Source: Oikopleura dioica
Taxonomy: Eukaryota > Animalia > Chordata
DNA length: 64,000 nucleotides
Assembly: GCA_907165135.1 (NCBI GenBank)
Contig: OU015568.1
Location: 3,968,001-4,032,000, forward strand
Direction: 5' to 3'
Of the stretch, positions 2,068 to 55,364 are shown one piece after another (position 1 is the stretch's first letter; each line of letters begins with the position of its first letter). The translations under genes were made by a program, and so were the position numbers. Under the pieces are notes generated by a model. That model was given only the letters and a program-made list of their open reading frames with translations. It made no database searches and was not told the origin of the DNA.

Positions 2068-2871
2068 TATATAATTATATAAGACACAATTTTCTTTGGA
2101 GGATGACTCATCCTTTTTGAGGTTTTCTTCGAATTAAGATTATCAAATTTATTAAGTAAAATATAGCGTTTTACATAATCACTCATTTATTCAATTAGTG
2201 GTATCAATACTTATCTTCTTCTTCATCCTAAGTTTGAGACTCAGAATCAGCAAGAAAAAAAACGTGGTGCCGAAGAATTGCTGGAGCTCGTAGATCCCAC
2301 AAAACAATAAATAATTACTTTGGTATTTATAAAAATATCTTTTTTTTCGGCATGCGAGTGGCAGCTAAACACGATTCGAGCATTTTTAGTTGGGGTTTTT
2401 GATTGAAGATGCGTGTTTTCAACACGTTTTCGCTGTCCAAAAAGCGCTAGAATCGAACTTGGAAAACGGTCGGGAAGACGGGAAGAATGCTGTGGTTTAT
2501 AATTTAAGTAGGTATATGTCTATACAGGATAATCTGGTGGAGGCTCCCTTCAATTAAAAAATGGCTTGTTTTCTGTCGGAGCCACGGCGCTCTTTTGATA
2601 CGGACGGAGAGATTCCGGCGTCTACGTAATTTTCTAAAAGGATGTTGAGGCCTTTCTTTTTTGGCTTTTTGGCGGGAAATTTTCAAATATCCCGGAAACT
2701 TTACTGTTTTAGGTGCATCTTATACTACTAAATGCTGCATAAATCTTATCAAACCAATGTCGATACCCTTAAATAACTTCTCCAGGTGTCTCCTGATTTT
2801 TCGGTTCTAGAGGACTAATTTAAGGGTATTGGCATTTTTGTCTGTGAGATTTACGTGGCAGACACGGGATG

Positions 2872-2899
2872 TGACTGACTGACTGATTGATTGACTGAT
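2872..2899. repeat. (TGAC/TGAT)n tetranucleotide microsatellite
   Basis: tgactgactgactgattgattgactgat. Confidence 0.85.
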
Positions 2900-4600
2900 A
2901 AGGCCGCGATAAGAGACGAAAATAACCTACTTCAAGAATTTATTCTTTCTTCGATTTTGGATCGTTCTAAAATCAGAACTGGAGCTATAATTTGCAGAAA
3001 AATGCATCTTTATCTGTTTCGTAAGATTCCTTGAAAGAAACGTGAGGCGGGCTATTATTGTATTAGCTTGGGGAACTTGTGTGACATACCATAACGGCCG
3101 TAAGTCTCCATCTGGTGAAGAATTTGCACAGCCTTCGCTCTAAAACCCAAAGAAGCTAATTGCTGCCTGTGGTTTCTTATTCAAAAGAGGCCAAAATGAT
3201 GAAAAAGATCTCGCTTATTCGAAAATATATAGTAAAGGGAACCCTAAACTCGTCAGCTGAATTTATTGAAAACAATGATGCTTCACGGTATGAGTCATTT
3301 TCGCCTAAATCCTCACCTTCCTTTTTTCAGATTACTAAGATCAATTATATTTAGGGAAAGACCCAAAAAATGGTTAATCCGCTAATAAATCGCATTTCTC
3401 GAATAATGGAAGTGCATTTTTGGAAAACCAATAAGATTGCTGTATTTGGCTTACCGGCCAATCAAAACTCTTATTCATAAGATTTCTTTCATTTTTAGCC
3501 AGTCTAAGTTGAATTCATTCACCGTCTAATAAAAAAAAGATAGTGTTAAGTCAGAAACTACTGTATTTATGTAATTCTGTGGTTCAAAGATCATTTTCCA
3601 TTAGAATTAAACTTAGTGAACCACTATTTATGTGTTGCGGTATTTCAAAAGTTTCGTTGCAATTTGGCTCTCAGATCCTGGATCCCCGAATATTTCCCTG
3701 AAAATACATTTTTGAGAACTGTTACGAAAATGTTCTTTTCCCTGTAGCATCCGGCAATTTTCCTTCCTGGATTATCGCATCTGGATTGTAACGAACCCTA
3801 ATTTTACGCTTGATTATTTGACTTTCGGGTTCTCACTTTTTTTTTGTAAATTATGATGCTCTTTCTCGGTACATCTTTTTTCTCCTAAATTTCGTGTAGA
3901 AATTCCCTTACTTACTGTATCTTCTGAATCGCTTGACAAAACTCCTCGCTGTCTGAAAATAAGATCATCTTTTAAAAACCATAAAAACGAAAGCTGAAAA
4001 AAGCTAAAATTCCCAACAAAAACATTCCCACGAATAATCAAAAATGAAAAACAAAACGTTGTGAAAAATATTCGCAATCCAATTTTCGGTATACAGCAGT
4101 CGTAACTGGATTTGCTTTTTCACGTTGAGCAGACTCACCCGTAATCGCGTGAATTTCGTGGTCGCCAATTTTTTTAAGAATAAAAAAACAACTATTACAA
4201 AAAAAAATGTCAAGGAGGAACATGTCAAGAAGGAACATAATTTCGAAATCGCTCACTCCAGGCAACTTAATTTTAGACCTCTAAAACCTCGAAAACATAA
4301 TGTAAAAACATAATAATTTATTATCAGCGTTCAGATTTCCCTTTATCATGGCCACTTGAAAGTCTTTGAAGACGACAAAGGAACACTATCTTTTTTGAAT
4401 GCGGCAATTTATCAAAATGCGCGAGACGCGGCGTTTTCTAAATTACCTTCGTAATGAATTTTTTCCTCATCACCCAAACCATCTAATAATAATTTCACAA
4501 TAGCTCATGCGTCATTGTAACACTCGCTGGCGATTTTTAAATTAGCTCTCACTTTTTTCGGCTTTCTTTTTATCCACATTGCCCGCCCACCTGCGTTAAA

Positions 4601-36109: not shown

Positions 36110-37429
36110 AGGAACCGAGCACGACTTGCACCGGCGCGCAGACTTACAATGAAGACTTGACCGATAATGGCTTCTTGTCACTTCTTGGCGAGGGACTTTA
36201 CATCGACAAGGTCACAGTCGGTAAGAGATTCGACTAGAAACAAAGTCATCACCCGCTTTATTTCAGGGCGAGGCAGTGAGGAGGTCCCGTACAACGATCC
36301 TTCCTACGATGGCGATGTAATCTTCCACAACGAAGGTGACAAGGTGCGAGTCGGCTGCCAACTTGGCTACGATAACGGCGTCGGAAAGCCATTTACAGCT
36401 GCTGAATGCGTCTGTGAGACAGGGCTCTTCTTCGATCATTTTTTAAGAGAGCAACGGAGAAAGAGCCCTGTGATAGCAAGGAGATTGCAGCTTCCAGTTC
36501 GTAAATAACCCGAACTTCAACTGCGTCAGCCACGAACAAGGACAGCAGATTCCCATCTGGGCTGGAGGAAATTTCAACTCCATCAGGGTAGCGATTTCTA
36601 AGCACTTTCTACTCACCGCTATTCTTTTCAGAAAGTTTTCCCATCCTACTTCGTGATGAAAGCGCGAGTCTCCGACCTCTTGAAGGCAGAAAAATGGGAC
36701 TTCGATACCGTCGATACAAAAGCGCATCCTGAGTACCTCGATCCTAACTACTGGAAGACCGCTGACTTCACCCTCTTCATCTGGTGCCCCTTCGATGTCA
36801 CCAAGGGTGGATACAACGGGAATGATGGTAAAATTACTGTCGCGGACTTTTACGAGGCGGAGCACTCTCCTGATGGACATCTCTGGTCGTTCTTGTCGAG
36901 ATCGAAGACTAAGCTTTTCAAGGTTTGTTTCAATTTAATCAACATTAATACCATCATTTAAAATACCTTGTTCTACAAATGGCATAAAATTAATCGCTTT
37001 CATCAGAGTAAATTCTCGCCGGAAAACACTTAATTGAAATTACTAAATTTTTTTTATTTTTATGTATTTATAGTATTTACTTATTTCATTTTCTAGACTC
37101 CACGATGCATCCCCAACAAAGAAACCGGCCTGGTCGAATGCACCTACAGATCGTACTACTTCCAAGCCTACGTTGACCGCTCAATGAACCCCGACGAGCA
37201 GGGACCAGTCGACATCAACACTGAAATCGTCCCCGGCGAGACCTGGACTTGCGAGACCGGAATTCTCCCCGGCCACCAGAAGTACGCCATCACTGGCTTG
37301 ATGAACTACTACGAGATGTTCCAAAACGGCACTTTCGAAATGATGCCCAAGTACTTCCGAGATCCTCCGGCTCATATTTTGCCAGTTGAGGAATCCAAGA
37401 AGAAGAAATCACGAAAGAACCAGCTCTAG
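36110..37429 (+). CDS. Cys-containing, probably secreted protein with a sushi/CCP-like module; first exon not located
   Basis: Spliced: EPSTTCTGAQTY.../...VRVGCQLGYDNGVGKPFTAAECVCET/QGDCSFQFVNNPNFNC.../KVFPSYF...LFK/TPRCIPNKETGLVECTY...WTCETG...KKSRKNQL*. Confidence 0.65.
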
Positions 37430-37668
37430 AAAATCAGCCCTAAATCGACCCTGAACGAAATCAAAAGAAAATGACCAACAAAAGAGAAATATTTTCTGAC
37501 CAAGTTTTCTCTTTTTGTTTTTGTTCATTTTCTTCATTTCTGTCCCTTTTTTGAATATCAACTGAGAAATATTACCGTCAAGAAAATACAAATTTCAATC
37601 AGCCTCGGAAACTGTAAAGAATAAAATAAGGAAAATTTTTATTTACAAAAAGCATCAGATTTTCGAAA

Positions 37669-40600
37669 TCAAGGAAGAGGGCGAAGAACAATGAGGGTTT
37701 CCGCGAATGAGCCTTCTACTTCTGCCAAGAGCTTGAAGAAACCAATCGATTTTGTTCGATCGAGAGGGACGGATAATCGGATGTTAATCAGATTGTAGCC
37801 TTTTGAAAGACGGCCGGATTTTTCGGTGACGATTTCGGGGACCTTGTTCGTATCGCTAGAATTTGATTGATAAGCTGAATTACTCTTTCTTTTCAAACCT
37901 TTGGATGATTGACCATTTTCCCGCCTTTTCCGCTAGGCAGGGAATTTCGAGAATTCCAGACTCGTACCAAAAATTGAAAACTTCTTCGTCGAACGAAATT
38001 GAATCATCCTCACTTATCGAGTCGAACTTGATGAAATCACCGACATCAATTGGTTCCAGAGTGTCCAAATCGTCGTCGTCGAGAATTTCTAGCGCGTAGT
38101 CGGCTTCAGAAGAGGTGGTGGACATTGAATCGACTGACGCGAGCTGCGAGTATTTTGGTCGAGAGAAAGTTGGAAGAGCGGGGAGGATTCGAATGGACGT
38201 CTCGTAGTTTCGCATGATATCGACAGAGGATTTTTCTGCGTTTCCAAGCGTCATCGAGAAGTTTCGCTCTTCTAGCGATCTTGGGCCGAGGTTGAGGCTG
38301 AGATCTTTGTAAACATCAGTTGGACCGAAGCGGATTTTGCCGGCGACGTCTTTTGTGCAAAAGAAATCGCGGCCTTCTTGAGCCGACCCATCTTGAGTGA
38401 AGATCAGAGCATCTTTAGCGCGGCCGATACTTCCTCGCCGGCGGACTCGGACGGAGATCCTTAAAATTACCAAAAATTATTCTCAAAATCAAGTTACTTT
38501 TTCGAGTTGGGGGAAATATTAATCTCGGGCGAGCAAAATTCCAAATATCCGCTTCCGTTCGGCATCGTTTCCAATCCATCAACACTGATTTGAATCTCGT
38601 TTGGAGGATCATCTGCTGGATCAGTAAGAACGTTACAGTTAGTATTTGGTGAAATTCGGCAGGTGAAGTATTTCGCTCCTTCGGCTTGAGAGAAGAGGAA
38701 AGTGGGTTTGAAATCGACGCTGACGGATGTGTATTCGTCGCCTTCCTGGAATCTGAAAAAAGCGATGAGAAACCATAATTTGGTTTCGAAAATGGGAAAA
38801 GCGATTTTATGAAGAAGTCAAAATAATGAATCTGACTTATAATTATAAACCCTTCTTAGCCATCTTGCGAAATCTGACAACACGATTATGTTTTAAAATC
38901 AATAGACAAAGAATATACCTGGCAACACCAGAAAGCTCCGCAAACAAGTCCTGATCGCTTTCAAGATTCTCCGACCAGATCTCCCAATTCACCGCGCACA
39001 CTTGAGAAGTATCCCCAGTTCTTGCGAGCTGGAAGTCAAGCTTGGTTTCTTCAAGATTCACAGAAATATCAGGAGTGTCAAAGATGACAGTCGAAAACAA
39101 CGTTTGAGTCTCGCGGGTGACGACATCTCGAACTCGGAGCTTAAGTTTATCATGAACCTAGAAATCGATTTGGAGAGGGAAAAGAGAGGGGCGCTTACGG
39201 TCTTGATTTCGGTTGCGGTTTTACGAATCAAAAATGGAAGAGGGATGATTCTGCGTTTGACCTTTTCCGCGGCGGATTCGTTTTCAGCCGGTTTTTCTCG
39301 GACGGAATCGTTTAGGTCATCGATGGACAGATTGTCGGTGAAGTCTTCTGGAAGCATTTCATTATCCATAAGCTAAAAATGGAATAAAAAGCGAACTTCT
39401 TTGAAAAATTTACCTTCGAGATCAACCTATCCATATCAAGTCGAGCAAGAGCTTGCCTGGCCTCCAAATCATCAATTGCAGGAGTCACCTCATTGTTCAA
39501 AATATCCTCCGACAGCTTTCGCTCCTTCTCGGCAGCGTCGAGCTCGTTCTTAAGATCTTCTCCCGCTTGAGATCCAAGACGCTCTTTTTCTTCGAGCTGC
39601 TCAAGTTGGAGACGCAACTTTGCAAGATCAAATTCGACGCTCTCGATTTGAAGATTTTTTTCAACTGATTTCTGGTTTCAAAATGTAAGGGAAGAAATTA
39701 GTGATCAAAATTTTTTTTGGAAATTTTGAAACCAAGCGAGTGTTAATCGTATTATTTCGACGCTTTTCTTCTCGTCGGTGATTTGATCAAGCAAGGAGGA
39801 TATTAGTGAGTCTTTTTCGTTTGTTAGTTTCTCGATTTTCGATTTGAACTCGTCGTCTTTCTCGCTTATTTTCCTTGCGATTTCAAGAAAGCGATTTTCC
39901 AGCTCGATTGCGAGTTTTTCAAGGGTTTCGATTTCTTCATCCTTTTGGCTGATTTTGCTCCAAAGGGACTTATTTTTCTCCTCGAGGATTGGAACTTGAT
40001 TCCGTTTGAACGATAACTGGACCCAAAGCTGGTCGTATTTTAGTTTTTGTTCTTCGATCACGTGGTTTAGATTTTCGATTTCTGATTCGAGCGATTCGGA
40101 TTTTGATCGTTCCTGTTTCAGAAGATCTTCGTAGTCATTAAGATTTTTCTTGTATTCGTTGATTTCTATGTCTTTTTCGTTCCCACAGGTTGTACAAGCA
40201 TTGAGTTTAGCTTCCAAATCAGCTCGCTCGTCTGTCAAATCACGCTTTTTTGGAGTTTTTGAAACAAAATTTTTGAAGAATATTTTTAGCGGAATTCGAA
40301 AACTGGCCTGAATTTGCTTCAAAATTTCCTTTTCGTCTTCTAGAGCCTTAATTCTATGCAATGATTTGCCTTGCTCCTCGATGAGTCGTTGGATTTCATC
40401 GTTGAGATCGTCGATGATTTTTTGAAGAGCTTTGTTTTCTTCTTCGCTTTCTTTGATGGATGTTCTGTATTCGAATGAAGAATAAATTGACGAAGATAGA
40501 TAGACCATAAATTTGATTCTTTATTGTTAAAAAAGTTTAAATTTATCGCTTTCTTTGAAAATAATTTTAAACGATCCCCATCGATTAGGAATTTAGAAGA

Positions 40601-43600
40601 GATTTCATATATATATATCCAATTCATAAATGATGACATCTCGTAGATAAATGAGTTCGTTTATTTGCAGTGGCTTAACGTTTTCGGAACAGCAAAAGTT
40701 CCATCATCAGAGCCGAAGTCTTGGAGTTACTTGTAAACCTTCCAAAAACAGACAAACGTACCTTTTGGTGAAAACTGCAGAACTGATCAAGCTCCCAAAA
40801 ACAATCATCCCTCCAGATAGTGTTCTAGAGAATTTAACCCATTAAAAACTCAAAAATTTGTCAGAGGCTCCTGCTCAATTTTACAATGCCTCTGCCTGGT
40901 ATTACAAAATAAAGATTTTCCTATGCTGTATCTGTTTGTTTAAACTGGGATTTTTCAACGAAATTTCAAGTCCCTCTACTTGTTTTCGTTTGTCATACGA
41001 TCGTTGAAAAATCCCAGTTTAAACAAACAGATACAGCATAGGAAAATCTTTATTTTGTAATACCAGGCAGAGGCATTGTAAAATTGAGTAGGAGCCTCTG
41101 ACAAATTTTCGAGTTTTTAATGGGTTAAATTCTCTAGAACACTATCTGGAGGGATGATTGTTTTTGGGAGCTTGATCAGTTCTGCAGTTTTCACCAAAAG
41201 GTACGTTTGTCTGTTTTTGGAAGGTTTACAAGTAACTCCAAGACTTCGGCTCTGATGATGGAACTTTTGCTGTTCCGAAAACGTTAAGCCACTGCAAATA
41301 AACGAACTCATATATCCAATTAATAAAAAAAGATCATCATTCCGCGCCTGAGTGAGAACACATCCTCAATATCAACATCCTCTGCCATGGAAGACTCGAT
41401 CATCTCCGCATCTCTGAATGGCGTCTGCACGACAATGTCATTTTCCCACTTGAGATCAAGAACTTCTTCATCTTGCTCCACCTTAGCTGTCTTCAACTCT
41501 TCGATTTCTTTCTCAGCCTTTGCTTTCGCTTCTCTGAGTTCATCAATAAGCTTTTTAAGCTCTTCAATTTCCTCTCCCGCCGCCTTGAGCGACACCTTCA
41601 TTTCAAAAGCATTAAGTTCGGTTTTACCGCTTTCCTTCTCCAACTCCGCAATTCGATCTTTCAACGACTTGATGCCAATGTCTTTTGAAGGTTTTGGATG
41701 TCAAATCATTTATGTTATTTTCTTGCTTTGTAATTTTGAGGTTAAGATTAGTAATGGACTCTTTGATGAATTCAAAATTTTTGGTGATAATGATTTGTGA
41801 GCTTTGCACGTTCTCCAGGTCGATTTCCAATTTCGATTTTTGAAGCTTGAGTGTTGAGACGTCCGATTCTAGCGATCGCTTTTCTGTTTCAAGGGTCTTC
41901 TTCTCGGATTGTAGGTTCGAGACTCTGTTGCCAATTTCTTTCAGATTTTTCTCCAGCACTGCATTCGCCTTTTCGATGTCTTGCAGAAGACCGTTAAGTT
42001 TATATACTTGAGCATCTTGCGCAGTTTTATCAGCTTGAAGTTGCTTGTTGTCATTTGTAAGGGCATTATTTTCGTCTTGAAGCTTTCGAACAAAGCTTCG
42101 AATTGTCACGAAATTTGCAGAAACTACATTGTTGGCTGCAATGATACTTTCCAGCTGATTCTCGAGGTCGATGTTTTTCTGCTTGAGGCTTTCGTTCTTC
42201 TTTTCTGAAGCTTGTAATCGTCCTCCAAGGTTGTCTCTCTCCAGGATAACAGCATCAAGAGATGATTTGGCCGAATCAAGTTTACCGTCAAGCTCGCTTA
42301 TTTCTTGAATTTGATCGTCGATCTTTTTCTGTTTTACGTCATTTTCTTTAACAAGAGCGAGTCGTGCAGTTTCATTTACCTTCAACTGCTTCTGAAGTTC
42401 GATTTTCGTAACTTCGAGCCGCTCATTTTCTTCTCTCAGGTCATCAACAAATTCGGAAATCAGCTTGAAATTGCTATGGACGATCACATTGGCGTTGGTT
42501 AATTTTTGAATGAGAACATCTGCATCCTCCTTTTCCTTCGTAATTTTCTTCAATTCATTCTCTAACATCTCTTTCTCATCCATAACCACGTCGTGAACTT
42601 TAGTCAGAGCATCGAAATCGTCTTGTAGATCTTCTTTCTCCGACTTCAGTCTGTCCTTTTCGTCCTTTGTCTGTTGAAGGTCAGAAGAAAGCTGATTCTT
42701 TTCTTCTTCGAGGATTTCAATTTTTTCGTTGAGAATGTCGATTTGGTCATTCAGGTCCTTAATTTTTCTTCATCAAGTTTCACCTGATTGACGGCGATCA
42801 TCTTCTCTTCATTCAATATCCTCTTTGATTCCTTCAGCGATTCATGATCCATTTCAAGCTTTGCTTTTGAAACTTTAACTTCGTCGAGTTCTTTCGACAT
42901 ATTTGCGAGATGATCCTTGAGCTGTTTCAGATTTGCTTCAAGAATCTTGCTCATGTCTGAAACATTATCCAATAAAACATGAGCCTTTTTCAATTCTTCT
43001 TGAAGCGCGATATTTTCTCCTCGAAGAGTGTTGATCTGCTTCCGAAGACTGTCAACATGCTTTTCGACCAATTCGAAATTTCCCTTGAGAACAAAAATTG
43101 CATCAGTCAAACTTGCGTTGAGTTTGATGGCAGCATCCCTTTCTGTGGAAAGCTCGATGATCGTCCTGTTGAGATTGTCGACTTCCTTTTTGATCAAATC
43201 GAAATTGGCCTTGAGAGTTGTGTTCGCATCCGTCAAGCTGACATTGAGTTTCTTTGCAGCATCCCTTTCTGCAGTTAGTTCGGTGATCGCCTTGTTGAGA
43301 GCGTCGACTTCCTTTCTGACCAAATCAAAATTGGCCCTGATGACTTTGTTCGCATCGGTCAAGCTTGCATTGAGTCTGTTGGCAGCATCCTTTTCTGCAG
43401 TGAGGTTGGTGATCGTCTTGTTAAGATCGTCAACTTCCTTTCTGACTAAACCGAAATTCGCCCTAAGAACTGTGTTCGCATCAGTCAAGCTTGCATTGAG
43501 TCTGTTGGCGGCATCTCTTTCGGCAGTTACGACGGTGATCGTCTTGTTGAGATCGTCGACTTCCTTTGTGACCAAATCGAAATTGGCCTTGGTTACTGCA

Positions 43601-46600
43601 TTCGCATCTGTCAAGCTTGCATTGAGTTTGTTGGCAGTATCTCTTTCTGCAGTGAGGTCGGCGATCGTCTTGTTGAGATCGTCGACTTCATTTTTGACCA
43701 AATCGAAATTCGCCCTGATGACTTTGTTCGCATCGGTCAAACTTGCATTGAGCTCGTTGGCAGCATCTCTTTCTTCAGTAACGCTGGTGATTTTCAAATT
43801 CAATGCGTCCACTTCATTCTTGACAATGTGGAAATTCGCGGTAAGAATGATGTTTGAGTTCTCAAGATCGAGAATTAGCTTATCAGCAGCCTTTTTATGA
43901 TTTTCCAAAATAGTTTTCTCCTTTTCCAAACCATAGATTTTGTCTAGAAGGTCAGAAACATGTCCAGCAACCTGCTTGAAATTAGCTTCAACAATCTTCG
44001 CAAGACTTTGTAAATTTTCAATTGTCTTATTCGCCTCATCAATATCTCCCGTCAGCTTTGCGCTTTCGCCGTCTTTTTCCGTAATCGTCTCAGTTAAAGT
44101 GACAATGTTACTTTCGAGGGATGAAATGGTTAGATGATGTTTTTGGATAATTGCATCTTTATCAGCAATTATCTCTGTTAGCGATGAATTTGTTTTGGTC
44201 AGTGATGAAATTTTTGACTTTTGGTGGAGAACCTTGGCTTCGAGAATTTTTATATTTGCTGCGAGGATTTTGTTCGCATCAAGATGATTTTCGTTGAGTT
44301 TTTGAGCATCGTCCCGTTCAGTTGTAAGGGTGTCGATTTCGTCTCCTTGGTCAATTATCATCTTCTGCAAAGATTCCACCTGATCATCAACCATTGAAAA
44401 ATTCGATTTCAGTACAAAAATCGAGGCTTCAAGATTTTGGTTGAGTTTTTGAGCATCGTCTCGCTCAGTTGTAAGCTTGTCGATTTCCGATTCTTGCTCA
44501 GCTATCTTCTTATTGAGAGAAACCACCTGGTCTTTAACCTTCGAGAAATTTTCTTCGATAATGAAGTTTGCATTTCCAAAGTCAACGATGATGTCATCAG
44601 CTTCTTTCTTCGCTTCTTTCAAATCTTCGTGCTCCTGTTCAAGCTTTGCTTTCTCCGTCTTGACAACAGCAAGTTCTTCAGACAAATCATCAAGATGTTT
44701 GTTCAATTTCTCCAAGTTTCCTTCGAGAATCTTGCTCATATCTGTCATATTTTCCAGAAGAAGTTGGGACTTCTCAAGATCTTCCTCAAGAACAGCCACT
44801 TTCTTGTTGGCGATGAAGAAATTTTGTGTCAAGATAACAGTACCAGCGGCAAGATTTTCATTGAGTTTCTGAGCAGAAGAAGTAACGGATATTCGTTCAT
44901 TCAAAAGGTCAACTTGATCTTTGACAAGCTTAATGTTTGCTTCCAAAATAGAATTGGCGCCGACAAGGCTTTCGTTGATCGTCAAGGCATTGTCTCTTTC
45001 TGAAGTAAGAGTGGCAACTTGTTGATTAAGTGAATCAACTTGGTTTTTGACCTTGCCGAAATTCGCTTTTAGGATCACCGTGGCACTGAGAAGATCCTCG
45101 CTTAGTTTCAAAGACTCATCCCTTTCAGAAGTAAGATCGGCAATCTTCTGATTTTGTGAATCGACTTGGTCTTTCACCGTCTCAAAATTCGCTGACAAGA
45201 TAGCATTTGCATCCGAAAGATCCTTGATGAGATTTTTCGCGTCGTCCCGCTGAGTCGCAAGGTGTTCAATCTCATCTTCCTGGACGATTATCTTCTGTCT
45301 GAGAGAATCCACCTGGCATTCAATCGTCGTGAAATTCGATTTTATAATCAAATTCGATTTTTCCAGATTTTGATTGAGTTTTTTGGCAGAATCTCGTTCA
45401 GTTCTGAGGTTTTCGATTTCCATTTGTTGATCAGCTATCGTCTTTTGGAGAGAGTCAACCTGATCTTTGACCGTCGAGAAGTTCGCTTCGACAATCATGT
45501 TCGCGTTTACGAAGTCAACAATTAGTTCATCAACTTCGTTTTTCGCGATTTCAAGGTCGTCAAACTGCTTCTGCAGAGCTGTCCTCGAATTTTCCGATGA
45601 CGTGAGCTTAATTTGAAGATCTGATTTTTCTGACTCAAGAGTGCCGATCTGATCTCGCATAGCTTTAACGCCGTCGATGATGAATTTGAAATTACCATTG
45701 ATGATCGTATTTGCACTTTCGTAGTCTTGGATAAGTTCATCAGCGATTCTTTTAGCGTCAGAAAGATCATGATATTTTTGACTAAGCAAATCGTGGTCTT
45801 CTTCGAGTTGTGCTTTTTCAGATTTGACATCAGAGAGTGCCACAGACAGTTCGTCGAATTGTTGTTTAAGTTTCATCAGGTTGCCTTCAAGAATTATGCT
45901 CATATCGGTCATGTTGTCCAATAGCAATTGAGCGTTTTCAAGTTCTTCCTCAAGATTTTTCTTATCCGATCTAAGCGTCGAGATCGTTTGATTAAGTCCT
46001 TGAACATGGTTGTTGACTAAACTGAAGTCAGCTTCCAGAATAACTGTAGCATCAAAGAGATCCTTATTGAGGTTCTTAGCTTCGTCCCTCTCAGCAGTAA
46101 GAGCGTCGATGTTTCGGCTAAGAGAGTCCACTTGATCATCGACTTTTTTGAAATTCGCCAATAAAATTGTGTTAGAATCCCGTAGATTCTCATTTAGCTT
46201 TTGAGCTCCATTCTTCTCAGAAGTAAGATCAGCAATCTGAAGATTCAAGGAAGCAACCTGGTCTTTTACAATCGCGAAGTTTGCTGCCAGAATAACATTA
46301 GAATTCTGAAATTCCTCATTCAAATCTTTCGCATCGTCCCTTTCTTTCGTTAGATTCGTGATTTGGAGTTCCTTAAATGCTACGTCATCATTCAAATCAG
46401 ATATCTGATTGTTCAGCAAATCGACGCGGTCTTTGACTATTCCCAAGTTTTCAGCAACGATGACGTTAGATTTTGCGAGATCGGAAACAAGACCGTTCGC
46501 CAAATCCCGTTCATCCTTGAGGTTGGTAATTTGACCGTCTTTAGCAGCTACTTGATCTTGTAGATCGGATATTTCTTGATTCAAGGACTCAACTTTATCC

Positions 46601-49600
46601 TCGACAATTTTGAAATTTTCAGCAATGATGATGTTAGAGTTTTCAAGGTCTGAGTTCAGATTTTTTGCTGCGTCTCTTTCCTCCGTAAGACTGCTGATAC
46701 GAAGGTCTTTAGCAGTCACTTGATCATGCAGATCCGAAATTCGCTGATTTAGGAAATCGACTTGATCTTTGACCTTCTCGAAATTCTCTGTCAGAATGAT
46801 GTTTGAGTTTTCGAAGTTAGATATCAGTTCTTTGGCCGCGTCTCTTTCATTTATTAGGTTGGTGATTTGAAGATCCTTAGCAGTAACTTGATCTTGAAGA
46901 TCCGAAATTCGTTCATTCAAGGAATCCACCTGACTTTTGACCGTTTTGAAGTTGGCTGCTAGAATGATACTTGCATCAAAAGGATTCCTATTGAGTTTCT
47001 CAGCGTTTTTCTTCTCAGTTGTAAGACTGGCGATTTCGAGATTCAACGTATCAATTTGATCATTCAACGACTTGAAAGTTTGGGCAATTATGACGTTCGA
47101 GTTTTGTAGATCAGTAATCAATTGATCAGCAATTTTCTTCTGCTCCTCAATTTTCGTTTTCGCTTCTTCCGTTGCAGTAAGTCTGCTCTGAAGATCTGTC
47201 TTTTCAGACTCAAGAGAACTGATCTGACTTTGGAGAGTTTTGACAGATTCACTGATGAACGTCAAATTACCGTTAATAATTGTTTTTGCGTTTTCGTAGT
47301 TTTTAATAAGTTCATCGGCGATTCTTTTTGCTTCAGAAAGATCACTGTACTTTTTATCAAGTAGATCCTTCTCAATCTTCAGCTTCGCATGTTCTTGATC
47401 CAAGATCTTTTTCGACTCTGTAAGACCATCAAAATCGCCCTGAAGCTTTGCTTTTGACGCCTTGACATCAACAAGCTCTTCAGTTAAATCCGTAACATGA
47501 TTCTTGATCTTCTTCAAATTTGCTTCGAGAATCTTGGTCATGTCATTCATGGTCGCCAATCGAAGCTTGTTGTCTTCAAGGTCTTTCTGAAGCTTTTGAT
47601 TTTCGCCTTGTAGTTGATCGTTATTGTTTTCAGATTTCTCAAGTTTTGCTTCAAGGTCCTTTTTCATCGCTTTCAGGTCGTCGATTCGCGCTTCTTTTCG
47701 CTTCTTATAATCGTCAAATTTAGCTTGAAGATCATTTTTCTCAGAAGTAAGCGCAAGAATATCCAATTGCTTTTCGATAACCTTCGCCTTTAGATCGTAG
47801 ATGTCGTCGCTTCCGTCAAACAGACCCTTCTTTTTCTTCTTATCCATGCGACCACTTTCGACAGAGGTATCGAGTGGAGTCACCACAACGATCGATTTTT
47901 CCCATTCGTAGTCTTCGATGAGAAGTCTTTGCTTCTCATTTTCTTCCTGAAGATCTTTCACATCATCCTTGAGGCGAATGATCGTTGAATCTTGATCCTT
48001 GATCTTGTCATTCATGGTAAGAGCGAGTTTCTGAAGCGTTTCGAAGTTAGCCTTGATGACGATGTTTGCATTTTCATAGCTCTGGATGAGAGCATCAGCT
48101 TTTCGTTTTTCATCAGACAGGGAATCCACTTGGTCTTTTAACAGATCAAAATTTGCCATCAAGATGATGTTGGCATCAGAAAGTCTGCTGATCAGATTGT
48201 GAGCATCGTCTCTTTCCGTAGTTAGATCATCTCGTTGAACACCGAGGTCGTCAACTTGCTGATTTAGGGCACCAACATTGCTTTTGAGCAAACTGAAATT
48301 TGCCTGGAGAATTGTGTTTCCATCGACCAGGTTCGCGTTCAGTTTCTGAGCAGCATCTCTCTCATTTGTGAGGTCCGAAATTTTCTGCTTCAGGGAATCC
48401 ACTTGATCTTGGATAATCTTGAAGTTCGCTTCGAAAATAATGTTGCCACCGACAAAGTTCTCATTGAGTTGCTGTGCCTTTCCAAGTTCTTTCTCCAGTG
48501 TGCCAATGTTATTTTTGAGGGATGAAATGGTTAGCTCATGATTGGTGATAATGCTGTTCTTATCATCAATGGAAGTTGTTAGAGATGAAATTTGTGTATT
48601 CAAGTCAAAAACCTTGGCTTCGAGAATCTTGAAGTTCGCAGCGAGAACTTTGTTTGCATCAAGAAGATTAACGTTAAGTTTTTGAGCGGCGTCGCGTTCT
48701 TCTGTCAGATTTGTAATTTGATCTTGTTGAACAGCTATCTTCTTATTTTGAGAATCAACTTCATCTTTCAACATCAAGAAATTTGCCTCTATGATGGTGT
48801 TAGAATTAACAAGGTCGACGATGAGCGCATCAGATATTTTCTTTTGCTCTTCAAGCGCTAACTTGTCAGACTCAAGAGAGCTGATTCGATCTTGCAGAAC
48901 TCTTACAGCGTCGACCAGAAGGTTGAAATTTGCTTCGATGACAATTCTAGCATAGTCCTTGTTTTCGAGAAGCTCATCTGCTTTTCTCTTCGCCTCAGCA
49001 AGATTATCGTAATTATCTTGAAGCGTTTGAAGCGATTTCTGAAGAGCTGATTTTTCATCTTTCAAAGTTTGGTTGTCATCCCTAAGTGACTGGACAAGAT
49101 CAGCTAGGAGCTTGGAATTTCCGTCGACCACAGTATTTGCGTTCTGGAGATCTTCGAGCTTGTTCTCCAAATCAGATTTGATCGTTTTCAGATCACCATT
49201 TTCAATCCTTAGAGATTTGACAGCGTCGACTAAGATCTTGAAGTTGGCCTCGATTACAATTTTGGCGTTGATATAGTCTTGAAGCTTCTTTTCCAAATCA
49301 GCTTTGTCGGCCTTGAGGGTTGCAATTTCATCCCTGAGAGATTTGACAGCGTCGACGAGAAGCTCAAAATTGGCTTCGATGACAATTTTTGCCTTCAAGA
49401 AGTCATCAATTTGTTTTTCGAGGTTCGCTTTGTCGGCTTTCAAGCTATCGTTTTCTGTCCTCAGAGATTTGACAGCGTCAACCAAAATCTTAAAGTTTGC
49501 CTCGATGACAATCTTAGCATTCGAAAAATCTTCGATCTGTTTTTCCAGATTTGTTTTTGTGACCTTCAGATCATCGTTTTCGGCTCTCAATGCTTTGACA

Positions 49601-52600
49601 GCATCGACCAGGAGGTTGAAATTGGCTTCGATGATGACCTTCGCATCGATGAATTTCTGAACCTTCTTCTCAAGATCGGCTTTGTCAGCTTTCAGAGCTT
49701 CATTTTCATCCCTGAGAGTCTGAACAGCAGTTGCTAGGAGCTTGAAATTAGCCTCAACAATTATATTCGAATTGGTCAAATCGTTGATAGTCTGTTCCAA
49801 ATCAGAGTTAGCAGCTTTCAAGTCGTCGTTCTCCGCCTCAAGCTTTGCTTTTTCAGTCCTCAGAGCAGCATTTTCATCGAGAAGAGATTTCACAGCAGAT
49901 TCAAGGGTCTTGAAATTTGCTTCAATAATCGAGTTCGCATTCATAAATGCTTGAAGTTGGTTCTTCAAATAAGCGTTTTTAATTTCAAGCGCTTCTTTTT
50001 CTTCCTTCAGAGTAAGTGCCAGCTTCATGATCTGGTTGAAGTTCGACTCTAGAATGATTGTCGCGTCGTGCAAATTTTTGATTGATCCTTCTTGCTCTTG
50101 ACATTTGATGTTCACAGCTTCAAAACTGACAGTAAGGGCGTCGTAATCGTGTTCGAGAGCTGATTTTTCTTTTTTCAACTGATCTCGTTCTTTTTCGGTT
50201 TCTGCTAACTCTGATGCAAGTCGAGTGTTTTCATCAATTTTCTCTTGAATAGTGGAGTTGAGTTTGACAGCTTCAGATTCGAGTGAAGCAATTTTCGCGG
50301 TGTCCAACTCGACCTGGTGCTGGAGAATCTCATGTTCTTGATCCAATATCTTCTTCTCTTTTTCAAGAGATGAATAGTTTTGCTGAAGATCGAGTTTTTC
50401 TTGCCTCAACGATTTCACCACACTAGCCAAGATCTTGAAATTGGCTTCGATAACAGCATTGGCTTTTGAAAAATCCTCAAATTGACTTTCAAGGTCTGCT
50501 TTTTCGATCTTCAGTGCGTTATTTTCATCATAAAGAGAATTGACAGCATCGACTAAAAGACTGAAATTGGCGTCGATGATAATCTGCGCGTTGTTTCGGT
50601 CTTCCAGTTGTTTCTCAAGATCAGCTTTCGCTGTTTTGAGAGCGTCATTATAATCGCGTAGGGCTTGAACAGCACTGGCGAGAATTTTGAAATTCGCTTC
50701 AATGATCTTATTCGCGTTTGATAAATCGAGAATCTTTTGATGCAAATCAGAGTTTGTAGCGTGAAGTTCATCGTTTTCTGCCTGAAGCATTTTGTAGGAC
50801 GTTGTCAAGTCGCTTAGATTCTTCTGAAGATTAACATTATCATTCTTTAAAGTTGTGTTTTCGTCAAGAAGCGATTTTACAGCTGATTCGAGAATCCTCA
50901 AATTCGCCTCCATGATGATGTTCGCATCGTCCATATTCTTGATCAGTTCTTCTTGTTGTTCACATTTGGCATTAACAGCTTCAAAACTCACAGTAAGAGC
51001 ATCAAACTTGTGTTCAAGGGCGATTTTTTCGTTTTCAAATAGATCTCGTTCTCGTTGCGTCTTCTTCAAGTCGGATCCAAGTCGAGTGATTTCACCAGCC
51101 ATTTCTTGGATTATTGAATTGCGTTCGACGGCTTCAGATTCAAGAGTGGCAATCGTCACGGTGTCAAAATCAACCTGTTTCTGAAGAATTGTGTATTCTT
51201 GGTCCAAGATTTTCTTTTCTTTCTCAAGAGATGCGTAGTCCGACTCCAGCTGTGCTTTTTCTCCCTTGAGATCAGAAATTTGCTTGAGAAAGGTAGAAAC
51301 ATGACCGACAAGTAGATTCACATTTGCTTCTATAACTTTGCTCAGGTTTTCAAAGTTTTCTAGAGCCAGATCGGCTTCTGCCTTTTCTTTTGCAAGAACA
51401 GCCTTTTCGGCTTCAGATTGTTTCAGCGAGTTCTTGAGGTTCGCGTTATCAACGACGAGATTTTTTAATTCCTTATCAAGCGCTGCGATTTGATCTGCCA
51501 TTTCTTGCTTTTTGATTTTGTCCGATTCAACTGTCGATTTTAAGTTTTCAGTCTCTTCCGTCAGTTTTTCGATGTTTGCCGTTAAAACCAAATTTGCATC
51601 GTTGAGATTTTTCTTCTCCGTTTCAAGCTGGTCGATGATGGAGTCTTTGTTCTTGATTTCATTTTGAAGATCATCAACTGTTGTTCGGAGAGCATTGACA
51701 AGAGTTAAGACAAGCTTGAAATTGGCCTCGATGAAGACATTGGCGTTTTTGAGATTGCCATTATCCCTTTCCAATTTCTCCGCTTGCTCTTTTTTAACTT
51801 CAAAGGCGACTGTCATTTCATTGAGCTTATGCTCAAGATCATCCTTCAAAGAAGTCAAGGCAGCATTTTCAGCAACTGATTTAGCGAGGGAATCGTCCAC
51901 CATGCCTTTCGCTTTGCTTAGACTCGTAAGGTTTGCATTGAGGGAGGAAACTTGGTCTTCAAGATCGTTGATTTTCTGGGTGTCGCGGAGGAGGTTTTCT
52001 TGAAGAATGTGATACTCTTGTTCGAGAATCTTCTTGGATTTGCTGACTTCGTTGAATTTTGCGTTTGTTGCGGATAATTTAGTTCTATTCATGGATGTTC
52101 AAAGAGCTCATATTTGCCAGAAATTTCAAAAATTATCATTTTTTTACGAAAAAAAAAAAAATTTACATCCATGTTCCTAAGTGAAGAGATCTCTTCATCT
52201 TGTTTGACAATTTTTGTTTTCTGGGCGGAAGAAATGATCTTCAAAACTTCAAAATTCGCAGCAATTATGATAAAGGCTGAGTCCAAGTTGCTATTTTGCT
52301 CCTTCAACTCACCATAAAGGTTCTTCAATTTGTTCTGGGCATATTTCAAACTGGCGATCTCTTCATTTTTATTGTTCAAAAGTCCATCTTTATCCTTGAT
52401 CTTTTGCTCGAGCAGGGATATTTTGGCTTTGAGTCTGTCGATTTCGGTGTTTTTCTGGGCGATAAGTTCGATTGCTTTATCTTTTCCATCGTGAAAAAAC
52501 TTGAGCTGGGCGGCTTGATCGTTTAGTTTTTGATTGAGGAGCTGTTGCTGTTGCTTGAGTGTTGCATTTTCGTTCTTTAACGCATCATTTTCAGCAATCT

Positions 52601-55364
52601 TGGAATTGATAATTTCCATTTTTTCCTTCAACTCATCTTCCTGTGCGGCAATAGTATCCCTTGCAGTCTTCAAGTCCTCGTCGAGATTCGCGCTTGCTAG
52701 TGACGCATTGGCCAAGTTGGTCGTTAAGTCGTCTTGAGAGGTTTAGTTATGAGAAAAAAGTTATGAATCATAACTTATGAATTGAGAAGAAGTTAAATCG
52801 TGAATGAGATGTTTTTCATGGAATTTGTGAATTTTTTGCGTAAATGCGTTGAATTTTTAAAACCCTTTCCTTGAAGCTTCTGAATTTCGTCGTTTTTGAG
52901 CTTGAGTTGACTTGCAAGATCATCATTTTCGGATCTAAAAAAATCATAACATTTGGTCAAATCAAAAATCAATAATTTAGCCAATCAAAAAGCTTCTTTG
53001 CTTTTAAAAAATGCAAATACTAACCTGAGTTGGAGATTTTCAGCTTTTGCATCGTCAAGTTCATTTTTCATTTTGTCCATGTCATACTTCATTCCATCAA
53101 GTAGCGCCTTGAGATCATCAATCTCCTGGCCTCTTTCTCGTACCTTCGTAGTAAGGGAGTCCATGTTGAACATGACGATGTCCAGAGCTTTGTCTTTTTC
53201 TATATTTTCGGATTTTAGCTTGTCGTTTTCTGCGTTCGAGTCGGCTAGTTGTTTTCGAAGATCAGCGAGGAGAGCATTTAGCTCGTCGATTTCTTCTTGT
53301 TTTTCGATGACGCTCATTTTGAGTCCGTAAATGTCTTCCGTAGGTTCATCTTGTTCGTTCTTGCTTTTGACGGTCTTAGCATCGAGTGGTGTTTTGAGAA
53401 TAATGTCGTTTTCCCATTGAAGATTGGTGATTTTCAAGTCCTTTGTGGCCAACTCGTCTTTCAATTGAGCGATGACAGCTTCAAGGTCCGCCAGTTCTTT
53501 ATTGGCATTGGCAAGTTTAGCATCGTGAATGGCGTTGTGGTTCTCCAAGTCGGCTTTTTCGGTCTTCAAGCGGTTGATTTGAGCACTTTGCGTGTCAACG
53601 TCCTTTTGAAGATCGTCAAAAGCGCCCTTGGCCGCGTCCAGATCAAATTGAATTTTGGCATTGAGTTCTTCTGAAGCCTTGAGCTGTTGTTTCAACTTCT
53701 CAAGCTCAGCAGACATGTCGATTCCATCGGTCGAGATATTCTTCGTTGATTTTGATTGTTTGCGCTCGTCCAAAATGGAAATGAAGCAACGAGCACCTTC
53801 TCGGCGGATTTTGCCGCCGTTGACATCATGGAAGACTCAACCGGATTTTCAAGATTTTAGGGACAATGTTATTCTTTTAATTGATTCTGGATCCGGGCCT
53901 AATATTATTTGGTCAATTTCTTCGCACTCAACTTTGCTTCGTTTGTGATTGATGCTCAAGGAAGAAGTAAAATCGTCGATGATGTCTTCAATCTGACCAG
54001 CAGGATTCACAAACATCAAACAAGTGAAATTTAACTAGCTCAACTATAAAAATCATAAATGATAAAGAATCATGCGTGATTATGCTGGTTCGTCTGGGTT
54101 TATCGTTATTTATGAGTTTGTGAATCCTAGCGAAATTGTCGTCTGTCCGCGTTTGTGGCCCGTTGGTACTATGATCTCACCTTTTTGAAGGTCAGAGTCG
54201 TTTCAAGGGAAGTTATTAACAAATACGTATAGCGCTACTACCTATTCAACTATTAAAAATTCGACCTCCATTCCTTTCCATCGTTGATATTTCGCCATGT
54301 TCGTTGCAATTTCAACGTGCCAAAAGGCTGTTACATCGTGATCAACGATCTTGTCAGTGACAGCACTGATGCTAAGGGATTGCCCGTGGCGGATCGAAGT
54401 AAGGACTCGATTCCACGAGACGCGGGGGACATCTTCAGAGATGGAGGCCACTAAAAATCAATTATTTTTTGAATAGTCAAAAGAACTGTCAAGCTACTCA
54501 GGTTTCTACTTAGTCTAAAAAACTTCTTTCTACTTTAAACATCCATAAGAAGATGACTCATATTTTAAGGAATTCTCAAAATATAAGAATTAATTTTTTT
54601 TAACTTACACTTAAGTTTTTTGATCTTTCTATCTGAAAAAAAAGCATATAAAAAGAACTAAAACTGTCGTTCTCAAATCAAAATTATGCTGAATTCACAA
54701 TTCATCGCAGTAAAAAGTACCTGAAGAGACCGAGGGCGTCCTTCGCAAGTGATAAATCTCCGAGCTTCCACTCGAGCTCCGCCGTATTTTTCGTCGTTCG
54801 GGAGTTAGCTGCGCGCTTGTCTTGCCATCCACGTGTATGATTTCATCACTTCCGGCGGCGCTTTTTCGTCTAGAAGTAGCTTGGTATCCGGCTTGATATT
54901 GAACCGACTCTTTTTGGATATTGAAGACGACAGCATCATTCGTTTTCGGGGTCTGTGGCTTGCGTCTCACCACTTGGGAACTGTTGAAGACTAAAAAAGT
55001 GCATTTTAGACTACTACTTTCGACTACGACCAGTTACCCCGGAGACTATTCCGCCACTCCCGCTGACTTGAATCTTAACAATTTATGATTTGTTTTTTAG
55101 TCGGGCGGACGAAAATCGTAAATGTGAGATTAGGGTGCTGATTCGCTTCCGTGAGCTGATAACTTATCAGTGATAAGTTAGACTTTTTGCAAAATAATCA
55201 AAAATTTGACAGAAAAATTAATTTTCCAAAAAACCGATTTGGTAGCCTTTATGTCGATCATACGATTAATAATGACTTGCTAGTTGCTACAGAGTTGAAT
55301 TTTCTCAAATAAAAAGACTCTTACGTGAATCATCTCTTCCAGTGGGCGGATCTCCCTCCACCAT
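37669..55364 (-). CDS. Giant coiled-coil protein (over 4000 aa rod) with Calx-beta-like domains at both ends; 5' end uncertain; local frame disruptions
   Basis: ORFs 52985-53773, 52089-52715, 42751-52092 (3113 aa), 41624-42589, 41320-41664, 39705-40508 and 39312-39617 join into a continuous heptad sequence. C-terminal exons (VIFDTPDISVNLEETKLDFQLARTGD; VRVRRRGSIG...TQDGSAQEGRDF...GKIRFGPTDVYKDLSL) and N-terminal exons (GEIIVPTG; KRITLSL...VNGGKI...FISILDE) resemble Calx-beta. Confidence 0.75.
40651..41311. repeat. Near-perfect foldback: 311-bp arms with a 39-nt spacer, in an intron of the giant gene
   Basis: Arms 40651-40961 and 41001-41311; I see only 2 mismatches. The ORF track shows identical 64-aa ORFs on opposite strands (40651-40845 +, 41117-41311 -). 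Confidence 0.95.
43080..43760 (-). repeat. Coding tandem repeat, 126-bp (42-aa) unit, most homogeneous block
   Basis: Recurring ANFDLV..EVD.LNK.I..LTAERDAA..LNASLTDAN; 42 residues from one ANF to the next. Confidence 0.9.
49190..49760 (-). repeat. Second homogeneous block of the 126-bp coding repeat
   Basis: Recurring AKIVIEANF.(I/L)LVDAVKSLR.EN..LK..K..LEK. Confidence 0.88.

Follow-up and report, generated by a model that had tools for sequence, protein, structure and literature searches.

A predicted giant coiled-coil rod protein with a CBD12-like Calx-beta tail in the genome of Oikopleura dioica

Introduction

In the Na/Ca exchangers NCX1 and CALX, two consecutive Calx-beta sandwiches form the cytoplasmic CBD12 tandem, which is part of a transporter loop. 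The calcium ligands of CBD1 in this tandem are acidic residues, which we take to be the E-F loop cluster DDD..E..E, a Glu in the A-B loop, and a DDD run after the last strand (2DPK work). Integrin beta4, a transmembrane receptor linked to the cytoskeleton, carries a single cytoplasmic Calx-beta domain followed by FnIII domains, and this domain is not known to have an exchanger-type calcium site. Long heptad rods with hinges, globular or unstructured ends, and periodic repeats occur in giantin, rootletin, CENP-F, pericentrin/AKAP450, and the tails of myosin and paramyosin, proteins of about 2,000–3,500 residues in total. Here, we describe a gene of Oikopleura dioica that appears to combine such a rod with a Calx-beta tail. 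It lies on the minus strand of a 64,000-nucleotide (nt) stretch (assembly GCA_907165135.1, contig OU015568.1, positions 3,968,001 to 4,032,000), hereafter called the window, whose own numbering is used throughout. The reading that we favor, with a probability of roughly 0.55, is that this is an intact, single-copy gene for an intracellular rod protein of ~5,000 residues with a CBD12-like tail, which would act as a structural tether or spacer.

The predicted protein shares with the NCX1 and CALX tandems a pair of adjacent Calx-beta sandwiches that follow one another in the same order. It differs from them in that the pair ends a coiled coil rather than forming part of a transporter loop, a third sandwich is added, the acidic calcium clusters are replaced, and sequence identity is 13–17%. 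The fold match to the integrin beta4 domain (PDB 3FQ4, 3FSO, and 3H6A) is equally good (Z 14.0–14.2), although the window protein has neither a transmembrane segment nor FnIII domains. Compared with the long rods listed above, its rod is longer, with ~4,200 helical residues, and it has a skip-free stretch of ~1,380 residues, and different end domains. A preliminary description of the locus, made from the DNA letters without database searches, knew of no characterized protein with this layout, and our sequence and literature searches likewise returned no named counterpart. The papers searched contained no account of an Oikopleura Calx-beta protein or of the rod gene, and those joining Calx-beta, coiled coil, and cytoskeleton were on hemidesmosome and Usher topics only.

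Results and discussion

A heptad rod of about 4,350 residues

A three-frame scan of 56.5–36.5 kb outlined a multi-exon gene on the minus strand, running from an ATG at 55364 to a stop codon at 37669-37671, with ~15 proposed exons that sum to ~5,040 codons (55364-37669; Table 1). Its longest open frame (52098-42754; 3,113 codons counted from the ATG at 52092) is flanked by open pieces with the same kind of sequence (53836-52988, 52742-52092, 42769-41627, 41700-41323, 40520-39708, and 39677-39315). These pieces are collinear and all on one strand, and the coiled coil carries on across each junction. Summed over the proposed exons, the coiled coil totals ~4,350 residues, or ~4,200 without three hinges, which at 0.1485 nm per residue corresponds to ~0.62–0.65 micrometre if extended. 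These values agree well with the ~4,400 heptad residues and the rod of ~0.6 micrometre proposed in the preliminary description.

By sequence, the rod is a canonical coiled coil. In the giant exon, Leu, Ile, Val, Met, or Phe fill 67% of the a and d positions in the best register (30% of positions overall), and 3,108 residues include just 2 Pro and 3 Cys. The heptad register is constant over residues 1-1376, 1453-2383, and 2405-3066 of this exon, and the longest skip-free stretch, of ~1,380 residues, would span ~205 nm. Three copies of a non-helical hinge (W-E-N/K-x-I-[IV]-[LV]-x-T-P, an acidic loop, then D-[IV]-[YF]-x-L-[KR]) cut the rod into segments of ~105, 1,700, 2,120, and 380 residues; a similar hinge was found in the relatives described below.

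A second recurring element is the motif [DN]-[AS]-N-x-[IV]-[ILV]-x-A-N-F-x-x-[LV]-x-x-x-V-x-x-L, which occurs ~54 times in the rod. The spacings between successive copies are all multiples of 7, most often 42 (17 times), 49 (10 times), or 56 (5 times) residues, with 35, 63, and 70 rarer. Successive a positions of the unit hold Asn (33 of 54 units), Phe (39), Val (44), and Ile, with Leu at d, and the a positions 21 residues away on both sides most often carry Lys or Arg (14 before and 28 after, counted from the Asn a position). The conserved surface positions are Ile or Val at c, Ala at f and g, and Asn at g, the last of which served as an anchor in selecting the units. At the DNA level, the most regular repeat block of the rod is a tandem array at 43100-43791 with a 126-nt period (42 residues, 6 heptads) and 5.4 copies; two further arrays have periods of 126 nt (49187-49610) and 168 nt (56 residues; 46510-46968). 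The array periods and motif spacings together suggest that the rod grew through duplication of blocks of 6–8 heptads. A genome search indicated that the rod gene is a single copy and returned no match to the rod repeat elsewhere in the O. dioica genome.

Pfam searches with the 3,113-residue exon and three other rod pieces gave generic coiled-coil matches only (ATG16, Rod_CreS, KASH_CCD, GAS, CENP-F_leu_zip, and others), and the score against Filament was 19 bits (cut-off 40). Orthology to rootletin, golgins (GRIP/GRAB), plakins or spectrins, intermediate filament proteins, or Myosin_tail_1 proteins was considered and rejected, as the scan of the rod contained no signature of these families. 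Hence, the preliminary description's concern that the protein might prove to be an ortholog of rootletin, a golgin, or a plakin was not borne out. A word-index protein search with the 3,113-residue exon and a 283-residue exon on its N-terminal side found nothing at E ≤0.001, a weak test given their length and composition. Throughout, the queries were individual exons of the window or intron-free stretches from the relatives.

The C-terminal tail contains a CBD12-like pair and a third sandwich

An HMMER search with the window exon 37883-38476 retrieved a small family of marine metagenome fragments from ENA, JGI, or Tara, together with multi-Calx-beta proteins. The relatives compared here are P0001–P0012 and the contigs L002, L003, and L009–L012. 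On its own, this exon scores 22.7 bits against Calx-beta (PF03160), below the Pfam gathering threshold of 27, because an intron splits the domain. Scores over the threshold come from the unsplit domain B of the relatives: 40.3 bits in L011, whose domain B is 70–83% identical to that of the window, 36.0 in L009, 38.1 in L010, 39.8 in P0003, and 40.9 in P0007. A C-terminal profile search added further metagenome fragments and one weak match to a tick Calx-beta protein, and no other named animal protein.

The C-terminus was modeled with AlphaFold (AF2) on the L011 relative (70–89% identical over these exons), using an alignment that included the window exons. The model has a predicted local distance difference test (pLDDT) of 77 and contains beta-sandwiches at residues 22–138, 149–255, and 318–413, with an acidic linker after the second. 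In VIA-align comparisons, domain A (model residues 20–142) matched NCX1 CBD1 with Z 14.3 (root-mean-square deviation 1.9 Å over 112 residues) and the integrin beta4 Calx-beta domain with Z 14.2, while domain B (residues 142–267) matched CALX CBD2 with Z 13.6. The A and B pair as a whole matched the CBD12 tandem with Z 13.9, and the next unrelated fold, PapD-like, followed at Z 9.8. Foldseek likewise placed the NCX1 and CALX CBD12 tandems at the top (E about 1e-14), and an Atlas search returned Calx-beta clusters only. Domain C (residues 318–413) is all-beta. As modeled, the C-terminus is thus a genuine tandem Calx-beta pair followed by a third beta-sandwich.

Whether such a pair could sense calcium was considered through alignment with canonical Calx-beta domains and the NCX1 and CALX CBDs. 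Domain B reads ...LNLG-PRSLEERNF... where CBD1 has ...IIDDDIFEEDENF..., and ...IRILPAL in place of ...TIFDDD; at the A-B loop position, too, domain B is without an acidic residue. The acidic calcium-ligand positions of CBD1 are therefore occupied by G, P, R, P, A, and L in domain B; domain A likewise lacks comparable acidic clusters. Judging from these replacements, the pair is probably not a calcium sensor, and we read it as a protein-binding module instead. The integrin beta4 cytoplasmic Calx-beta domain, too, reportedly need not bind calcium, as is said of the 3FQ4 and 3FSO structures.

The preliminary description had suggested a cytoskeletal tether or ruler with Calx-beta domains at both ends, perhaps regulated by calcium, and had named the ciliary rootlet, muscle, and giant epithelial cells as possible sites. 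In such a molecule, the end domains would bind calcium as CBD1 and CBD2 of the exchangers do and would switch attachment or stiffness. The superposition of the C-terminal pair on CBD12, the acidic linker behind domain B, and a Calx-like appearance of the N-terminal domain by eye are consistent with this idea. However, calcium regulation finds no support in the alignment, in which G-PR..E..R and P-A-L stand at the DDD..E..E and terminal DDD positions of domain B and clusters are missing from domain A. The reported calcium independence of the integrin beta4 domain and the failure of the N-terminal domain in Pfam, hhalign, and PDB searches (see below) also speak against a calcium-switched tether, which we consider quite improbable.

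The N-terminal module is a conserved, predicted beta domain of unassigned fold

The N-terminal module of the window protein aligns with an uninterrupted domain in L003 and L005 and with two modules in L002, and takes the same position in these relatives. Its final strand (...ARCFISILDE) is encoded in one exon with the start of the rod. The module had no Pfam match even at E ≤10, either as window exons or as the uninterrupted L003 and L002 domains. In hhalign, it reached a probability of 0.4% against a Calx-beta profile and 0.05% against the family's own C-terminus, a PDB profile search gave no sequence match, and BLASTP against the C-terminus gave E >1. On these uniformly negative results, an identity as Calx-beta, and with it a symmetric dumbbell, is not supported. 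Hence, of the two Calx-beta ends put forward in the preliminary description, the C-terminal one stands (Pfam in the relatives, Z ~14) and the N-terminal one, having failed the sequence and profile tests, is unproven.

Several leads on the fold of this module can be named, none of them more than a lead. An AF2 model from an eight-row alignment is all-beta at a pLDDT of 39.5, too low to assign a fold, and an ESM look-alike search pointed to PLAT/LH2 at 0.89, below the trusted level. By eye, the module is Calx-like (W..AT....Y...G.l.I / E.DQI.L / C.I..LDD), and the single stretch aligned by hhalign is the one expected for Calx-beta. Based on its conservation and predicted strands, the module is a real, conserved, predicted all-beta domain.

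Rod and C-terminal domains share one mRNA in a close relative

A pattern scan of metagenome contigs yielded L011 (3,553 nt) and L012. L011 is free of introns and runs in a single frame from rod (with a ...NNAIYLIEGN... unit) through a hinge and coiled coil to three beta domains and the end ...VVLRPLP, and L012 is the same sequence with introns at the same places as in the window. Within a repeated rod unit of L011 (L011:1012-1025), there is a 1-nt frame slip that is probably an artefact of short-read assembly. Tblastn aligned L011 to the window in order at 40457-40086, 39626-39411, 39372-39184, 39157-38915, 38754-38497, 38461-37901, and 37857-37672. Identity was 41% in the first match, a coiled-coil exon, and 62–89% in the other six; the first ~550 residues of the L011 rod had no significant tblastn match in the window. 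From these comparisons, the rod sequence is fast-evolving and the ends are conserved, and L011 stems from a close relative that is probably a further cryptic lineage of O. dioica.

Since the spliced L011 crosses the equivalent of the 883-nt gap at 41347-40465, we take the rod and the C-terminal domains as one gene; in this close relative, the two share one mRNA according to its sequence, including across that gap. At the other end, L003 has the whole N-terminal domain and the coiled coil that follows it in one uninterrupted frame. A concern of the preliminary description, that the end domains might lie on separate transcripts, is thereby answered for the C-terminus by the single frame of L011, and for the N-terminus to the extent that the last strand of its domain shares an exon with the rod.

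A different way to explain the locus is as two or three adjacent genes, for example, an operon, as is common in Oikopleura, with the 883-nt intron being an intergenic spacer. The gap is long for a genome with a median intron of 49 bp (PMC8008620), four RNA runs gave 0 reads on 37420-43400, and L002, which seems to hold two N-domain modules, gives a hint of tandem genes. Against this, the spliced L011 continues through the equivalent of the gap and on into the Calx-beta domains, the joined sides of the gap recreate a hinge with the length of hinges 1 and 2, and the last strand of the N-terminal domain is in the rod exon. We therefore regard separate genes as very unlikely.

The metagenome relatives share with the window protein the C-terminal trio (signature RRRGS.GR...FTRD..AEEG.DYF, ending ...VLRPPP), the N-terminal domain, and the TP-containing hinges. 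They differ in that their rods are apparently far shorter and the ANF motif is mostly lacking. From the N-terminal domain to the C-terminal trio, L003 covers 4.1 kb and L002 6.7 kb, the latter with ~830 coiled-coil codons in between. In L002:2046-4330, two successive copies of the N-terminal domain, each followed by coiled coil, lie upstream of one C-terminal trio, which reflects either a tandem pair of paralogs or an N-terminal module duplicated within a single protein. If L002 and L003 each represent one gene, rod length in the family varies more than tenfold, with the O. dioica window gene at the extreme.

Introns, frame breaks, and the intactness of the gene

Most of the proposed junctions are in-frame GT-AG introns of 38–270 nt; among these, a 43-nt intron before the last exon recreates the ...IIQS... 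junction of L011. Three of the ~14 introns apparently require donors other than GT (GC; GA or GG; and GC), a share above the 11% mean of the assembly. In the first of these to be considered (52167-52085), a GT donor puts the frame off by one, and a GA or GG donor 1–6 nt upstream mends it; its acceptor at 52085 is taken as used because the exon that follows the AG shows homology to other units of the rod. Assuming a 63-nt GC-AG intron removes two in-frame TGA codons at 53851-53837, and the N-terminal domain then has the same length as that of L003 (IIL-VFHD... versus IVLQLQ...VFKE). The third, the 883-nt intron at 41347-40465, gives a hinge 3 as long as hinges 1 and 2 when read as GC-AG; it is the longest of the gene, compared with the genome median of 49 bp. 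Inside it (40465-41347) lies a near-perfect palindrome, which may be an inserted foldback or an element resembling a miniature inverted-repeat transposable element.

In addition, the frame is broken twice by single nucleotides (Table 1). Taken literally, the reading frame is not continuous, given the two 1-bp breaks and the two TGA codons. O. dioica has been reported to have 11–12% non-canonical introns, and the Okinawa assembly OKI2018_I69 was built from Nanopore reads with Illumina polishing (PMC8008620). Because the assembly is Nanopore based and the target repetitive, both breaks look like assembly indels, that is, residual homopolymer errors; repeats are where short-read polishing is weakest. 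Other long repetitive genes in the same assembly may bear similar frame defects.

These same features could be read as the lesions of a recently disabled pseudogene. In its favor are the two 1-nt shifts, the two TGA codons (unless the GC-AG intron is real), the one out-of-frame GT donor, and the 0 RNA reads matched. Nonetheless, 3,113 codons are free of stops in DNA of ~40% GC, heptad phase and motif are kept through ~54 units, and the end domains are 62–89% identical to those of an expressed relative. Moreover, both shifts fall within A-runs, in an assembly built on Nanopore reads in which the repeat would be hard to polish, and non-canonical introns make up 11% of the introns of this genome (PMC8008620). 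On the sequence evidence, the gene is probably intact, and we consider a pseudogene unlikely.

Some points nevertheless weigh against our favored reading and should be kept in view. The two 1-bp breaks, taken together with three non-canonical introns, could mean that the gene is partly broken or mismodeled. Four RNA runs labeled O. dioica gave 0 reads at ≥92% likeness on 37420-43400, which is no test of expression; this result probably reflects very divergent cryptic species within O. dioica. Exon 1, with its start codon, is a guess from sequence, and a single gene for the N- and C-terminal domains is an assumption in both L002 and L003. A predicted homodimer of two copies of a 210-residue rod piece (43156-43785) scored 0.00, which is evidence neither way, so that oligomer state and orientation follow from heptad logic alone; the tether function is wholly inferred.

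Separately, it can be observed that species labels are a poor guide to read mapping in the O. dioica genome.

The predicted protein is probably intracellular

No 19-residue segment of the predicted protein was hydrophobic enough for a transmembrane segment, and no signal peptide was found on the only plausible first exon, where the predicted N-terminus is hydrophilic; in this, hydropathy agrees with the preliminary description, which had seen neither. Upstream of the head exon, only the ATG at 55364 comes with a good donor. The L003 relative has a head similar in character to the Ser/Arg-rich head of the window protein.

A secreted or extracellular fiber, belonging perhaps to the house or the extracellular matrix, has some attractions, since extracellular proteins, FRAS/FREM and ADGRV1 among them, frequently contain Calx-beta domains. 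Most Calx-beta matches in HMMER and the Atlas were to bacterial multi-Calx proteins of surface or extracellular type, and the 5' end of the mRNA rests on the predicted exon 1. This possibility is, however, difficult to reconcile with the missing signal peptide, the Ser/Arg-rich head, and a rod with only 3 Cys in 3,108 residues, and structurally the closest matches, the CBDs and the integrin beta4 domain, are all cytoplasmic. We regard an extracellular fiber as highly improbable.

A model for the rod and its ends

If the gene is intact, as we favor, the protein would comprise, in order, a Ser/Arg-rich head, a beta domain of unassigned fold, a four-segment rod, the CBD12-like Calx-beta pair, and a third beta-sandwich. 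Two chains would zip together in parallel and in register. The recurring polar a position (Asn) would penalize out-of-register pairing, which a repetitive rod might otherwise permit; Asn at a is a classic register- and dimer-specifying feature of GCN4-type zippers. The end modules would serve as attachment sites, with the Calx-beta domains acting as protein-binding modules as in integrin beta4, and the molecule as a whole would be a long structural tether or spacer. The Ser/Arg-rich head and the TP-containing hinges may offer phosphorylation sites. In evolution, the rod would have lengthened as blocks 6, 7, or 8 heptads long were duplicated in tandem, leaving its length variable and the ends conserved.

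Relatives with the same end domains have rods of apparently a few hundred to ~800 residues. This allows a broader proposal, which we put forward tentatively and regard as doubtful: the protein may belong to a probably appendicularian-restricted family with fixed ends (the unassigned beta domain and a calcium-blind CBD12-like pair), in which rod length has been reset by duplication of heptad blocks, from ~0.05–0.12 micrometre in relatives to ~0.6 micrometre in Okinawa O. dioica. Such a family would form a natural series of ruler or tether lengths with an Asn-at-a register lock, through which even the skip-free ~1,380 residues could pair correctly.

Feature coordinates

The features of the gene are collected in Table 1. 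On the opposite (plus) strand, open frames of 150–290 codons (43028-43900, 44437-45003, and 49279-49737) overlap the tandem repeats; they seem to arise from the repetitive coding strand, which is poor in stops, and do not look like genes.

Table 1. Proposed features of the rod gene, in order of transcription (window coordinates)
Feature	Position	Strand	Remarks
Proposed exon 1	55317..55364	-	ATG 55364-55362, ends at a GTAAGA donor; short hydrophilic start; read from sequence
Exon 2, Ser/Arg-rich head of ~90 residues with RRxS-type motifs	54721..54991	-	In-frame GT-AG candidate splice sites
N-terminal beta domain	53745..54450	-	Three exons: 54450-54251, 53992-53900, and the first ~30 codons of 53835-53026
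Proposed GC-AG intron of 63-64 nt	53836..53899	-	Would take out two in-frame TGA; predicted from sequence
Exon 5: end of N-terminal domain, rod segment 1 (~105 residues), hinge 1, start of rod segment 2	53026..53835	-	Sequence
Hinge 1 (WENDIILKTP...DIYGLK)	about 53404-53270	-	Within exon 5
Two short coiled-coil exons, 52934-52864 and 52732-~52168	52168..52934	-	Hold the first ...IIIAANFEVL motif
Short intron ahead of the giant exon	52085..52167	-	Non-GT donor (GA/GG) needed
Giant exon, ~10.7 kb, ~3,580 codons of coiled coil, hinges 2 and 3	41348..52084	-	Sequence
Hinge 2 (WEKSIVVVTP...KKKKKG...DIYDLK)	47743..47916	-	Holds 1 of the exon's 2 Pro; heptad register changes here
Frame break 1, 1-nt shift in an A5 run, ~42760	42754..42769	-	No room for an intron; coiled coil smooth in the new frame
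Frame break 2, 1-nt shift in a stretch with A4 runs	41627..41700	-	No room for an intron
Hinge 3 (WENDIVVQTP...DVFSLR)	41348..41454	-	End of the giant exon
Intron of 883 nt, GC-AG as proposed	40465..41347	-	Flanking exons contiguous in the relative's spliced contig
Rod segment 4, coiled-coil exons 40464-~39735 and ~39650-39414	39414..40464	-	L011 tblastn matches 40457-40086 and 39626-39411
Acidic and basic linker exon, from rod to first Calx-beta domain	39199..39372	-	63% identity to L011
Calx-beta domain A (exons 39139-38920 and 38752-38498) and first strands of domain B	38498..39139	-	83-89% identity to L011
Calx-beta domain B (...RVRRRGSIGR...TQDGSAQEGRDFF...), acidic linker, start of beta domain C	37899..38459	-	Pfam, fold match
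Last exon: remainder of beta-sandwich C, ends ...IVLRPLP, stop	37669..37855	-	62% identity to L011

Implications

The gene described here is real and unusual. Should it prove broken or unexpressed, it would be only a curiosity of repeat expansion. If it is expressed as modeled, its rod would rank with the longest coiled coils predicted for any animal, and the capping of such a rod by a CBD12-like Calx-beta pair is a combination not described for any characterized protein in the literature searched. Next to integrin beta4, the tail would also be the second case of a cytoplasmic Calx-beta module in which calcium binding has probably been lost. Two wider questions follow from the rod itself. One is how register is kept in a long, repetitive coiled coil, for which the unit with Asn and Phe at a positions is a candidate answer. 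The other is whether rod length may serve as a ruler, given that the relatives appear to bear the same ends on rods ~5–40 times shorter.

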